Assembly: GCA_037447605.1 (NCBI GenBank)
Contig: CM074804.1
Coordinates: 3,449,909-3,513,908 of the forward strand
Direction of reading: 5' to 3'
Length of the DNA stretch: 64,000 bases
Source: Zygnema circumcarinatum SAG 698-1b
Lineage: Eukaryota > Plantae > Zygnematophyceae
Shown one piece after another: positions 25,909-33,968 of the stretch (its first letter is position 1; the number at the start of each line of letters is the position of its first letter). The translations under genes were made by a program, and so were the position numbers. Under the pieces are notes generated by a model. The model was not told the DNA's origin. It was given only the letters and a program-made list of their open reading frames with translations, and searched no databases.

Positions 25909-27093
25909 TTAATAACTATCATCATCATCATCATCATCCAACACTTCTCCTACAACATAACCTCCAACAGCCCCTATTACAGCAGCTTCCACGAGCCCAC
26001 CTGCCACGTCTCCAGCTCCACCAAATCCTTCCCCTCGGTTCCTTTCGATCCCCTGCTGGTTCTGGTATGGTCCACCTGGGGGATAACCTGCATAGCCGCG
26101 CTGAGGAGGAGCAACACCAGGGGATGGGTATGGGGGATAAACTGGCATACCATAAGGCGGGGGCCCATACCCACGTGGGGCATAACCGGGAGACTGAGCC
26201 GGTAAATAGGGTGGTGGTGGCCCTTGAGTTGGATAAGGTCCTGGCTGGATGGGCTGAGCAGAGAGCATGGGTTGGCCAGCTTGGACTGGTGCTGGCTGCC
26301 GAACCCTGAATTCAGGACCGCTGGTTGGACCTGGCTGGGACGACGGGCCAGGGTGAGGCCCCGGAGAATAGACTGGGCGGGATGGGGGCCCACTCGGAGA
26401 ATAATACGATCCATTGGCAGGTCCAGCAATATGATTTGGAACAGGGTTAGCCTGGTTCACGTATGGGCCAGGTATCGGGCTGTGGCTTTGTGGGCGGAAA
26501 GGCATTGAACCTGGCGATGCCACAGTTGCAGGCACAGGCCCAAGTCCCGGCCGTGGTTCCATGAACCTGCCAGAGCCTCCCCTTACAGGTGTCTGCATTG
26601 GCCCTGAAGCCTGCTTCTGAAGAGGCACAGGCTCACCCGGTAGTGGGGGTCCATAGAGTGGTCCAGGCAAAGCAGATGATGGGGAAGGAAGAGTCACTGG
26701 AGCACGAGAGCGGGGAGCAACGCTGACAGCTATTGTTACAATTCCGCAAGGCTTTCCCTCAGCAAAGAGAGCGTAGCTGTGAGCTTTATTGTAGTGGTCC
26801 ATGGCCGTTTCTAAGGAAATTACAGCTGTTCCCAGGAGGCCATCCAGTGCTGGAGAATCGAATATGTCAACCCTAATGTTTGTTGCCTCGTCACCTGAAA
26901 TCAGCTCCTCGTCCACATAAAAGACATGCCGTGCTTTCCATACGGGGTCCTCGCCTACACCTGGATTGGTCACAAACCGTTCGTTGCTGCCCTCAATGCT
27001 GACCACTGCTACCGGGGGTGCAGTGACGAGCCGAAGCTTTCTCAGGTTCTTTGCAGCGAGAACGGTCACATCCACTGGACGCTTCGATGCCAT
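25909..27093 (-). CDS. Single-exon C2-domain protein with Pro/Gly/Tyr/Gln-rich tail (SRC2/BAP-like)
   Basis: 394-codon intronless ORF. N-terminal VDVTVLAAKNL..PVAVVSI..GEDPVWK..IRVDIFD..GLLGTAVISL is a C2 fold; it is followed by a PYP-rich low-complexity region and a GAVGGYVVGEVLDDDD end typical of SRC2-like proteins. Confidence 0.85.
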   Translation of the reverse strand: MASKRPVDVTVLAAKNLRKLRLVTAPPVAVVSIEGSNERFVTNPGVGEDPVWKARHVFYVDEELISGDEATNIRVDIFDSPALDGLLGTAVISLETAMDHYNKAHSYALFAEGKPCGIVTIAVSVAPRSRAPVTLPSPSSALPGPLYGPPLPGEPVPLQKQASGPMQTPVRGGSGRFMEPRPGLGPVPATVASPGSMPFRPQSHSPIPGPYVNQANPVPNHIAGPANGSYYSPSGPPSRPVYSPGPHPGPSSQPGPTSGPEFRVRQPAPVQAGQPMLSAQPIQPGPYPTQGPPPPYLPAQSPGYAPRGYGPPPYGMPVYPPYPSPGVAPPQRGYAGYPPGGPYQNQQGIERNRGEGFGGAGDVAGGLVEAAVIGAVGGYVVGEVLDDDDDDDSY

Positions 27094-27964: not shown

Positions 27965-30900
27965 ATGGCGGCTTCCCTGGCTGCAGGTGGAGGATGTGAC
28001 CATGCTGCATTCCACTGTGTTCGACCGCACTGTGATTCTGGGATTTTAGGGTTCACCTACAACTTTTCTCTGTTCTTCAACATGCTCTATGCTGAGCAAC
28101 TCAAGTATACGCATGTTTTGTAGGGGCCTGTCCTTGCAGTGCGCATGCCAGCCATGGCTCGCCTCATCTGCGTTGGGGGAGGTTCTCCTTGCACGACGCG
28201 TCTTGGCATGAGTCTCTGCAACACCATGAGAAGCAAAGCATTGCCGTTCTCTTCTCAGGTAATTCTGCCCTGGCCATACCTTTCTGTTTTGTAAGTTAGC
28301 CCGCAGCTCGCTTGCATTAGTGGCCGAGTGGTTCAAAGCGACAGACTGTTATTCGAGTGCAACAGTAGGGAATGTAGCACTTTCAAGTTGCTTTGGAGTT
28401 GTCTTTGCTACTATAAATTCAGCGTTGTAGCCAGCAGTTACTAAACTGCCAATATTTTGACTGATTAGGGAATTGATCATCTGCGTCTAAAAATGCCAAG
28501 GATTCTGGTAACCTTTTCGAGTAAGCAAGCTAACATTCCTACGGAATGTTCACTTGCAAATCTAAGATCGCAAGTTGCAATCACTTATTTCAAAACTCCT
28601 ACTTTTCTGCACAGTTTTCAATGTTGATGGCTGCCAATTCTTTGCTGTGTGGTTGAGCTGCGGTTTGAATGTATCCCCATCTGCATTGCAATGACGACCG
28701 TCTACATTTAACTCGCAGTTCTTTTTTGCAGCCTCAGCAGAGAAGGAACCTTCATATCGCACCCCTCAGGGTCCGTTTGGATACCGACTTTGTGCGTTCT
28801 CCAAGTTTGGGAAAGTCTACGCTTTTCAACCCACTGGTATGGCTAATTTCCTAGTCCGTGCCCCACCGACCCTACTTCGTTTCCCCACGCCTATCTGCCG
28901 TCTTTGAAAAATGTTGCAATTGCAACAAAAGACTTTTCTTTAACTCTAGAGTTAGAATGCATACTTCACGCCGGTATTGAACTGGCCTTCAACTATTCCT
29001 TCTTCCTTACATTGGTATCCTTTTGAGGTACAGAGAGCTTGGAAATGCACCCACCTTGAGTCAGCTGTTGAAGCTGGTCTATTGTGTTCTAGGGTTTAAG
29101 CTAATGCGACTTATGTTCAAGCCTGATAGTCAATTTGTCACGGAACCAGAGGCTTTCAAGTTTGTCTCCATCATCAACTGACAACTGTTTGACATATAGT
29201 TACAGTGAAATGCTGGTGCTTGTTGCTTTCTATCACGTTTTCCATTTTTGTTCTAAGTGCAGTTTGTTTGTGCAGCCTCAAAAGAGATGCTTCCACGCAG
29301 CACGTATCAGCATGAGTTTGTGCACAGGCATTGTTGGACTTCCTAACGTGGGCAAGTCGACATTGTTCAATGCATTGGTACCATCGCACCACTTACACCT
29401 CCGCCTACCTTAGTATGCAACCTTAACGTTTCAAGGAGGGAACCCTCAAATTTTAAATAGGCTCAATAGTGTTCTCAGATGCTTGAGAGTAAAAGTATAA
29501 GTTGCTTCAAGGAGGCTACTAAAGTAAGACCACCAGATGGTTTACAAGGGGCTAATGGTGTGTTAAATTAAAGAACGCAAGTGATGTGCATTGAGTATGC
29601 CTTGTCAATTGTCGATGTTTGACAACCTGAAGGTTTTGCTCTTTCAATGTGTAAACGAGTTCAGATGTCACATGTAGAGGTGTCCCATGCTATGCATGTC
29701 TCTACGTCTTAGGCAGAAATGCCTCGCTGACAAATGGGCTGGAGATGGGCATGTAGGTGGAAAATGGCAAAGCCCAGGCAGCCAATTTCCCATTCTGCAC
29801 TATTGAACCCAATGTAGGGGTAGTGGCAGTGCCGGATCCACGCCTGCAACTGCTGAACGAACTGGGTCGATCCCAACGCATGGTGCCCGCGGTGGTAGAA
29901 TTTGTGGACATTGCTGGTCTGGTCAAGGGAGCTAGCCAGGGAGAGGTGAAGCTCCATCTGAGCCTGCACCTTTCAATCACTTCTTTCCTCCTTCAATACT
30001 CATGTTCTCATCCTTTACATGTGCCTTCTCGCCTCTGTTTGTGCTTGCGACTTCATCTATTCTCTTTAACTATTTTTTCATACTTATAGAAGTGTCATCT
30101 CCAATCTTCGCTCTGTTTATTAGTATGTTGGATTGCCTTGACTCAGCCAAGTATCTCATCTCACTACATGCCTGACATCAGTTCTTTATGACAGTATGTT
30201 TTTCATTTTTCATGGGGAATTTGCATCATATTTTCCTCCAGTCAGCTTGTACCTCTGCACATCTGTGCTCAGCATGCCTGATCTCTTGCTGTTTTTTTGT
30301 AACGTACCTAAAGTCTGTGCGCACCACTCCTTGGCGATATGCAGGGTCTTGGAAACAAGTTCCTCTCACACATCCGGGAAGTGGACTGCATAGTGCAGGT
30401 GAGGTTCCTTGTCTAGTTTTCCTCTGTAGTCTTCTATCAGTGGAGGCACAAGCTGCAGGATACTGAACTGTTTCACTAAAACATGGAAATGTTTAATTTA
30501 AAACCTGAAAGTTCAGTTTCGGAATTCGAACTCTTATCCAGAATGAGAATCCCGAGATAAAAATCGAAATCTAGTGGTCGAACTATTCGAAACATTTCAA
30601 ACATGGGGGCACCATAGTTAAGTAATCCAGACAAGCTCTATTCTTGTAGTTTTCGCTACCTCACCCCTCCAAACGCTTGGAAAGTCTTTAATGAAAACAC
30701 TCTGAGCACAGTGATTTACTTAACATTTGTGCATTACCTTAAGACTCCATCCCGGAAAATCTATAACTGCATCACCTCTTCCTGGCCATTCGGCAGAAAC
30801 GTCTCATTCACAGTCTATTTTTGGCTTTCAGCAAATTTATTGGTTTCTTGTCCGGTCGGGTAGTTCCACTTGCCCTTCACCTGAAAGGACGACATGCATT

Positions 30901-33900
30901 CCCGCAATCGCAATCGCAATCGATTGTGCTGTTCACAATTGTCAAGTTCCTGCAGTGTAGTGAAGATCTGCGGCCTCTTCCCTTTTCCCAGTTTCCTTGG
31001 GTCACAGTCGTAGCATACAAACGGCACCCCATGTTAGAACCTCCATTTTTCCTCCTTAGTCACTATTTTTTCTAATCCTCGAAGGCCCACACTTGACTGG
31101 AGTAATGTCTGTTGTTGCGCAGGTTGTGCGATGTTTCGAGGACAACGACATCGTGCATGTACAGGGGAAGGTGGACCCTGCAGCGGACATTGACATCATC
31201 AATTTAGAGCTGGCACTTGCTGACCTCAGTCAGGTTAGTTCTGTTGGAAGTACACAACAAAATCGCCGGTGTTAAGAGGTAGAGACAGCTACAACTAGTG
31301 GTATCATAGTGAGTGCTCAATGTTCTCCATGTGCTGGTTGATAAGCAGATTGAAAAGCGAATGGAGCGGTTAAAAAAGGGGCGAAGCAAGGACCCGAAAT
31401 TGAAAGCCAAGGTATGTGCAATTCTTGTTTTGAGCAACAGCAGTCGACTACTTTTTTTCTCGGCAGGTTTACAGGCAGAGCTATCCATAATCTGACACTG
31501 GTTCTTTCTGCATACGACTGCGTGAGTCAGTTAATATAGCCCGTTCATACTGGTCACCTAAACCTATAGCAACTGGAGCTCAAACTGAGGAACCTTTGTT
31601 GTTACTGTTCTGCATATGGGTCTACTGAGCCCATTCGATTTGAAATGCATTCAATATTTACGCTAAGCGTCGAAGCCTATGCTGCAGTCAACGAGGGATG
31701 GAGAGAGGGAGATGCGCAGCTTCAGGGTGCAGTAAAAAGGCACATGCTTGTCTGTCAAAAGCCAAAGTCATTTGCTTGCAAATTAAGGCAGGGAACTTTG
31801 GCTTTCTGGATCACTTGGCCGTGTGCTATTTAAGCAGTGACATTCAGCAAACGATGCAGAACAGTCACACTTTCCTTGAGGCATTATGGAATTGTAGGAG
31901 GACACAGAAGCTGCTGCATTGGAGAGAATTTCTGAAGGCTTGCTAGCCGGCAAAACAGCACGTACAATACCCCTGAACGATGAGGAGTTGCCGGTGGTTC
32001 GCCAGCTGTGCCTGCTTACCATGAAGCCCATCATTTATGCTGCCAACGTCTCAGAAGGCGATTTGGCGGATCCTTTCTCCAACAAGCATGTGCAAAAAGT
32101 TTCGGAGATCGCAAAGACGGAGGGCGCGGAGTGTGTTGTGGTCTCTGCTCAGGTGGGTTCCATGCCCCACGTGGACGAGTTAAGTGTGTTCATTGATGTG
32201 TCTAATTACTACACTTACGACATTTGTCTTGCTTGTCCTTAGAAGGAGAGGTGGAGAAGATAGACTCATGACGTTTGTTTGCCTATGCAGGTAGAGGCTG
32301 AACTAGCAGAGTTGGATCCACAAGAACGGAAAGAGTACCTTAATTCTATGGGTGTTGAAGAAGGTGGCCTGGGCTCGTTGGTCCGGGCCACTTATGCAAT
32401 GCTGGGTCTGCGCACATTTTTTACGTGTGGCGAGAAGGTTAGAAGACCTTCCTTTGGTTAGCTTGTCGGTAACTTCTTGGATCGGGGTGCATTATATCCT
32501 ATTATAAAGTCGTGTGAATCCCATTTCAGTGTTTCAAATGCCAGACACAATAGTTCGTATCCTCGTGCCACTGTACCACACGGTCAATAATTGCATTGCA
32601 TACCTCTTGCAAGAAACAAAGTCAAAGTAAAAGTGCTTTGCAGTACACATGACGTTTATCTCCTTCAAATGAGAAGGCGAGTCCCGCTTGATCCGTTGCA
32701 TAGAGCATTCGCTTCGACTCCATCAAAATTAGATCTTGAAAGGGATGGATCTGACGTTAGTTGAACGAAGGAGACCTTGTATCCGGTGGACTTAGGTCAG
32801 TTTTTTTTTTCAGCAAATCTTTTTGAGAACGTTCTTATTGAAATACTTCACCTGGCCTCATGCCCCTTTATGAATTATGTTGCGATTTTGTTGGAGCAGG
32901 AGTCAAGGGCCTGGACCATACGTGCAGGCATGACGGCTCCACAGGCTGCAGGGGTCATCCACTCTGACTTTGAGAGGGGCTTCATTCGTGCTGAGACGGT
33001 TCGAGTCTGAACCTTTCGTCACAGTTATGGATGATCTGCTTCTGATAGGGTTAATCTTGTTTGCGTCGTCCTCTGCCCTCTAGACTCCAGCCAAATGTGT
33101 TTCAATCTTCTGTTTCTCATTTTTTTCGGCTACTATCCGTGGCAATCAGTAAAGGCCCACAGTGTGAGATCTCTGAGTGCTCCTCTGCACCCGACCCACT
33201 TTCATTCAAGCAGAGACGACTGAAAGTGTCGTTTCCTCCCTTTGCCATCTGTTGGCCCTTCCTAAAGTCCTTTCATGCTGACTTTTCAAAACATCCAATT
33301 GCTATTTAATCTTGACTTACATCTTGGTTATTGAATAAGAAGAGTGGATGAGAATAACTTGAGATTTTCCTTCGTGTGCAGATTGCATATAATGATTTTG
33401 TTGAATCAGGCTCACACAGTGCGGCACGGGAGAAAGGTCTGGTAAGGAATCTGCGCTCTCAATGCCCACTCAAGAAAGCAGATGGTTTGGAAAGTGCATG
33501 TGGGATATCATTTGAACACGATGGTAATTGTGAATAGAGGCTTGATGGAATACACTCATAAATTGTGCTGCTCAAGGATTGGTTTATTGTTGACTCTTAA
33601 CATGTGGAATCATATATGTCGCATGCATCCTTATAACTCTGAAGAACCTATGGATAAGTTTGAATCAGCCGGGTTATAGCAGCTGGATGCCGCATGTTGC
33701 AAGTTAACAGCTATGGGAACGAACTCAATGAAGCAAAACTTTCTGCCTGCCATCTGATGGTGGAATGAGGAAACACTGGACTGTAACACAGTGGATGGGA
33801 AGCCATGCGTTGTTGTGCACATGGTGCGGCAGGCCAAGGCTACGTGAGCATGTGACACTCGCAAGCAACTGACTGGTTGTGCGTGTGTCGGCTTGACAGC

Positions 33901-33968
33901 TGCGCTCTGAAGGCAAGGAGTACATCGTGCAAGAAGGAGATGTGCTCCTCTTCAGATTCAATGTATGA
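27965..33968 (+). CDS. ychF: Organelle-targeted ribosome-binding ATPase YchF (Obg family)
   Basis: Exons 27965-27986 and 28140-28258 give a transit-peptide-like [16 protein letters not shown]... Then [17 protein letters not shown] / [39 protein letters not shown] / [14 protein letters not shown] / [11 protein letters not shown] / [44 protein letters not shown] / [22 protein letters not shown] (TGS domain end). Confidence 0.95.
28732..28836 (+). CDS. Duplicated, diverged copy of the YchF P-loop exon (candidate mutually exclusive exon)
   Basis: ttttttgcag|[35 protein letters not shown]|gtatgg; 105 nt, phase 0-0, open frame. 17/34 aa identical to exon 29276-29377. Confidence 0.7.

Follow-up and report, generated by a model that had tools for sequence, protein, structure and literature searches.

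The window analysed here, to which all coordinates refer, is a 64,000-nt stretch of DNA from Zygnema circumcarinatum SAG 698-1b, a green alga related to the land plants. It carries a bacterial-type YchF gene on the plus strand, at approximately 28145–33968. Residues 1–363 of Escherichia coli YchF (query from NC_000913) are matched in order by tblastn between 29312 and 33965. This same-order similarity to the reference, together with a G1 motif, places the gene in the YchF family. Exons were used singly as search queries.

Exon 1 (28145–28258; 38 codons, donor CAG/gtaatt) is taken at the limits given by an earlier sequence-only reading of the window. As read from its codons, it is rich in Ser, Thr and Arg and contains no acidic residue, which is presequence-like. 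Further upstream on the plus strand, reading of the sequence points to a possible coding mini-exon at 27965–27986, running from ATG to CAG/gt (ATGGCGGCTTCCCTGGCTGCAG followed by gt). Joined in frame to an acceptor at 28139/28140, it would provide a typical MAAS.. transit-peptide start. Two related exons follow on the same strand. Exon A (28732–28836; 105 nt, 35 codons, donor CTG/gtatgg) is a degenerate copy of the P-loop exon. Exon B (29276–29377; 102 nt, 34 codons, donor TTG/gtacca) encodes the last residues of the presequence, the beginning of the mature protein and G1. The mature protein begins at ISMSL.. (level with Met1 in the alignment to E. coli YchF), within exon B and downstream of A. 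Angiosperm YchF homologues, of about 420 aa, consist of a presequence followed by ISMSL... Exon 3 (29757–29945, plus strand) is the downstream partner common to A and B and is 70% identical to E. coli YchF residues 28–84. About eight further plus-strand exons, with approximate borders, extend from 30345 to the stop codon at 33968 and match residues 84–363 by tblastn.

Two other features lie near these exons. On the minus strand, 25912–27093 is an intronless open frame of 394 aa, divergent from YchF. By eye, its N-terminus is C2-domain-like and its long Pro-rich tail ends in a run of Asp; no exact-sequence record of it was found in the assembly collection. Within intron 1, 28316–28340 (GTGGCCGAGTGGTT..) is similar to the 5' half of a tRNA. 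Neither ARAGORN nor Rfam makes a call at this site, and the introns yielded no tRNA and no Rfam element.

The sequence-only reading had described A and B as a tandem duplicate of the P-loop exon, and the coordinates and sequences that it gave for both are correct. Each exon is preceded by tgcag and followed by gta, and each is in phase 0-0 with exon 1 and exon 3, also as described. The proposed homology is real: A and B derive from an old tandem duplication in which phase and splice sites were kept. Their peptides are identical at 17/34 positions, the value first reported, and align with z = 15.2, none of 2000 shuffles scoring as well; the local DNA alignment reaches z = 9.9. Of 34 codons, 20 agree at the first position, 26 at the second and 14 at the third. 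Silent divergence is saturated (pS 0.80), against a pN of 0.29. Most identical residues use different synonymous codons, a pattern that we recover with a slightly different count (12/17, where 11/17 had been claimed).

On the 5' side, the similarity extends some 20 nt beyond the AG; on the 3' side, it stops at the GT. The best-kept part is a 29-nt acceptor block on the plus strand, composed of GCAG, a T-rich tract, a second GCAG and the exon's first 12 nt. The block of exon A (28715–28743) and its counterpart at exon B (29259–29287) are identical at 24/29 positions. This exceeds the identity of the remaining exon (52/90; Fisher P = 0.015).

Exon B is, as judged from its sequence, the canonical exon, predicted to supply the working P-loop. 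It is 82% identical to E. coli YchF residues 1–22 (tblastn) and matches Pfam MMR_HSR1 at 28.4 bits (cut-off 21.9), with seven P-loop families matched at E ≤ 10. Exon A is 62% identical to residues 7–22 and matches zero Pfam families, even at E ≤ 10. For a motif comparison we used 223 YchF instances, made up of 155 plant-type proteins and 68 bacterial loci; some of the bacterial contigs come from gut metagenomes and served for the motif count only. The 17-residue motif of B hardly varies in this set: it occurs in just a dozen forms, nearly identical to each other. The exception is a bacterial fragment with a frameshift (P0110), which is the sole instance with Arg at the first Gly.

Exon A deviates at 7/17 positions of this motif, and its residues at these positions occur in 0/223 YchF sequences, barring the frameshift artefact P0110. 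As the sequence-only reading had noted, the G1 motif changes from GLPNVGKS in B to RSPSLGKS in A. The first Gly of Walker A (GxxxxGK[ST]) is replaced by Arg, and the A peptide no longer has this consensus. Both Gly flanking strand 1 and a family Asn are also lost, and a Pro is placed inside helix 1; the strand GIVG of B reads DFVR in A. The A peptide lacks the family-invariant residues of a functional YchF P-loop, and several of its specific replacements are to Arg, Ser or Pro. What it retains is the core GKSTLFN, comprising the phosphate-binding Lys and Ser and the start of helix 1, with silent changes.

Five streptophyte relatives were compared with the window: one Logan contig (L003), Closterium (GCA_947470075.1; L005) and three further loci (L086, L087 and L089). 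All five have one P-loop exon per locus in genomic DNA by tblastn, and an A-like copy was not found by tblastn in up to 10 kb upstream of that exon. On this evidence, the duplication is specific to the window's lineage. The intron immediately before the P-loop exon is common to L003 and the window. At 18 positions fixed in the five relatives, A has changed 8 and B 0 (P = 0.008).

The introns around A and B have no residual similarity (local alignment z ~0). Intron identity on the A/B diagonal equals the 0.26 background, and the 40 + 40 nt adjoining the exons are also at background (22/80 identical). Saturated silent sites and decayed flanking introns indicate that the duplication, lineage-specific by this comparison, is nevertheless old.

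Two observations concern repetition around this exon. In Closterium, a 26-nt unit is reiterated 10.1 times at 97% identity in L005:10044–10306. Each copy combines the final 20 nt of the YchF P-loop exon with its donor GTGAG. The array follows directly on the orthologous exon and presents ten 5' splice sites in tandem, which suggests that the same exon end is duplication-prone in a relative. In the window, 28187–28220 in exon 1 is similar to the 5' half of exon B (29289–29324; 27/35 nt, RLGMSLC against RISMSLC). The spacings of this likeness are about 560 and 544 nt, and it is marginal (z ~2.2, P ~0.03–0.05). The exon 1 segment may descend from an earlier, partial duplication of the P-loop exon, as a third copy recruited into the presequence.

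The losses in A could mean that it is a silent relic, a decaying pseudo-exon skipped in essentially all mRNAs, with exon 1 spliced to B. We consider this possible, if rather doubtful. The seven missing family-invariant residues, the absent Pfam match, the strong asymmetry in rate (8 changes in A, 0 in B) and the lack of an A-like exon in the five relatives all fit a relic. So does the failure to find an A-like peptide of 34–107 aa in the protein collection or any in JGI metagenomes. A low rate of validation for exons predicted from sequence points the same way: in a human survey, 1,399 of 6,541 predicted candidates were validated by at least one junction read and 855 by at least three, a share of only 13–21% (PMC5740500).

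A protein search with the open frame of exon A returned no candidate, and a representative protein search with the variable exon as query returned fragments only, at no more than 67% identity. A protein word search with the open frame of exon 3 found nothing closer than 87% identity, and hence no protein of this alga in the 60–192 aa range. A profile of a Cannabis scaffold and single window exons recovered angiosperms only. A metagenome scan for A-like DNA found none, and a scan with the variable exon found bacteria only. In a literature search, no paper was found on YchF splicing in plants or algae.

The sequence-only reading took the synonymous-codon pattern as a signature of purifying selection. 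The copy is indeed old, as that reading held, but synonymous codons are no proof of constraint on A. The pattern is not diagnostic for A, since silent changes on the B lineage can by themselves give rise to it. With B protein-constrained and A neutral, a simulation gave both 17/34 identity and the observed codon-position pattern at ~0.3 changes per site, as a relic would predict. Silent differences between twin exons prove no constraint on the spare copy; for that, an outgroup or a neutral flank is required.

The flanks are less favourable to a relic. With their identity at background, neutral change of up to 0.4 per lineage is rejected (P = 0.0085), and at 0.45–0.5 the 22/68 first and second codon-position differences of A are too few (P = 0.023–0.0025). 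The GKSTLFN run also counts against it. Unbroken in A with 5/7 codons silently changed, the run has P ~0.007–0.06 under neutral drift, depending on the rate, and P is 0.001–0.03 for the run together with the absence of a stop codon (neutral simulation). Exon A is open in all three forward frames (28695–28904 and 28712–28843), and the missing stop codons therefore carry little weight.

Composition and splice signals further argue against a relic. Exon A is exon-like, with a GC content of 51% and 27% T, compared with 42% GC and 33–35% T in the flanking introns. The acceptor block is conserved (24/29), and the splice signals of A are intact and stronger than those of B. Both the pyrimidine tract of A and its donor (gtatgg) surpass those of B and at least equal those of the gene's other introns, while the donor of B (gtacca) is the weakest in the YchF gene. 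Since a duplicate begins with its twin's signals, skipping of A would require an unseen silencer. Together, the decayed flanks, the GKSTLFN run, the base composition and the splice signals give modest support (P ~0.01–0.05) to the view that A has been retained as an exon, probably under a protein constraint much weaker than that on B.

A retained exon might be reached by a separate start. Transcription could begin within intron 1, with an in-frame ATG at 28669 and reading through the acceptor into A, and such a product would lack the exon 1 presequence. The open frame 28669–28851 does start with ATG and is continuous with the frame of A. An in-frame ATG is unremarkable where all three frames are open, however, and the acceptor block has kept the form of a splice site. 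We regard an alternative first exon as very improbable. The chance that some reading other than those considered in this work applies is similarly slim.

A and B could instead be true mutually exclusive exons, with mRNAs containing A or B and never both. One product would be canonical YchF. The other isoform would differ from it at the end of the presequence and have a P-loop that is altered or impaired. The pair has every property by which such exons are predicted from sequence, namely length, phase, splice sites and homology (PMC3228551). The GKSTLFN core is kept with silent changes, and skipping of B is conceivable because its donor is the weakest in the gene. Against this, the pair is not frame-locked, as A + B is in frame. 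Frame-incompatibility is seen in 71% of a set of 28 human genes that have validated pairs and for which the Drosophila orthologue has such exons too (PMC5740500). The A product would carry Arg at the first Gly, a DFVR strand and a Pro in helix 1, which are found in 0/223 YchF sequences (artefact P0110 aside), and A has no Pfam match.

No enforcing mechanism emerged for exclusive use of A or B among the three considered, which were frame shift, steric hindrance and competing RNA structure; one mediated by proteins is conceivable. The A–B intron, at 439 nt, rules out steric hindrance. Docking-site pairing with selectors near both exons was examined in intron 1, the A–B intron and the B–3 intron, and its energies equal those of dinucleotide shuffles. 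The best docking/selector duplexes are interrupted by large loops, and simple inverted repeats are at chance level. A docking/selector RNA structure governing the choice between A and B was rejected as a candidate because it showed no excess over the shuffled controls. We consider mutually exclusive use of the two exons unlikely.

The reading that we tentatively prefer, without calling it probable, is that A precedes B in the mRNA, either constitutively or as an optional cassette, and lengthens the presequence. A tandem exon copy starts out with the splice signals of its twin. The duplication would have given A the same signals as B. Strong signals, a length of 3n and a place upstream of the mature N-terminus would then make exon1-A-B-exon3 the default product. 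In that product, A would contribute 35 added residues of cleaved presequence, and B would not be replaced. The orphan strand and P-loop copy would be free to degenerate, with selection still acting on frame and splice sites. We infer the splicing of A, and its joining to B, from these features of the locus.

Several properties of the locus agree with joint inclusion of A and B. At 105 and 102 nt, both exons are multiples of 3, and exon1-A-B-exon3 is in frame as a result. The A–B intron is an ordinary, T-rich intron. The loss of seven invariant positions and the 8 changes in A, against 0 in B, fit a piece freed from nucleotide binding. Joint inclusion would account both for the lost invariant residues of A and for its preservation as an exon-like sequence.

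Other properties speak against joint inclusion. It leaves the GKSTLFN run unexplained, and such a run is unexpected in a mere presequence. Asp is uncommon in transit peptides, and exon A holds three. The presequence with A would be long, at ~85–95 residues.

What the locus would mean differs between these readings. Should A merely precede B, the locus would show how an organelle presequence can be extended in a simple way, by a first exon that is duplicated and afterwards decays; the evolutionary interest would be modest. A relic would be an ordinary finding. Use of A in place of B in some mRNAs would be a rare case in the plant lineage of mutually exclusive splicing on the catalytic motif of a conserved ribosome-associated ATPase, and would supply a natural allele with an altered Walker A. 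One plastid YchF gene might then yield two proteins, depending on whether the intact or the remodelled Walker A exon is chosen. The second isoform would bind nucleotide differently or not at all and could act, for example, as a regulator or a ribosome-binding competitor. We think it quite unlikely that the gene works in this way.

Mutually exclusive exons are the nearest known system. WebScipio-type criteria predict them from tandem exon duplication (PMC3228551), and the substitutions of tandem-duplicated exons have been treated elsewhere (PMC9741552). A and B resemble such exons in being adjacent and homologous, near-equal in length (105 vs 102 nt), in the same phase, with conserved splice sites and encoding the same structural element. 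Their exclusive use is conjectural, however, and they are not frame-locked. Established pairs usually keep both copies functional, whereas A has lost family-invariant residues. The position of the pair also differs from known cases: it lies where the presequence meets the mature protein, and joint inclusion would be tolerable there.

Docking/selector RNA competition is known from Dscam and 14-3-3 xi, and an evolutionary model has been proposed (PMC6071210). Tandem duplication could in principle make two selectors for one docking site, a likeness to the A/B locus, but the introns around A and B show no pairing beyond dinucleotide shuffles. As for the host gene, its counterpart is the bacterial-type plastid YchF/OLA1 Obg-like ATPase of plants. 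The window gene aligns in order with E. coli YchF residues 1–363, and B has the near-invariant motif of the family. YchF loci of angiosperms, Closterium and three other streptophytes have a single P-loop exon, and a second, degenerate copy occurs only in the window genome. From its sequence features, the A/B pair is best filed among the known class of tandem exon duplicates.
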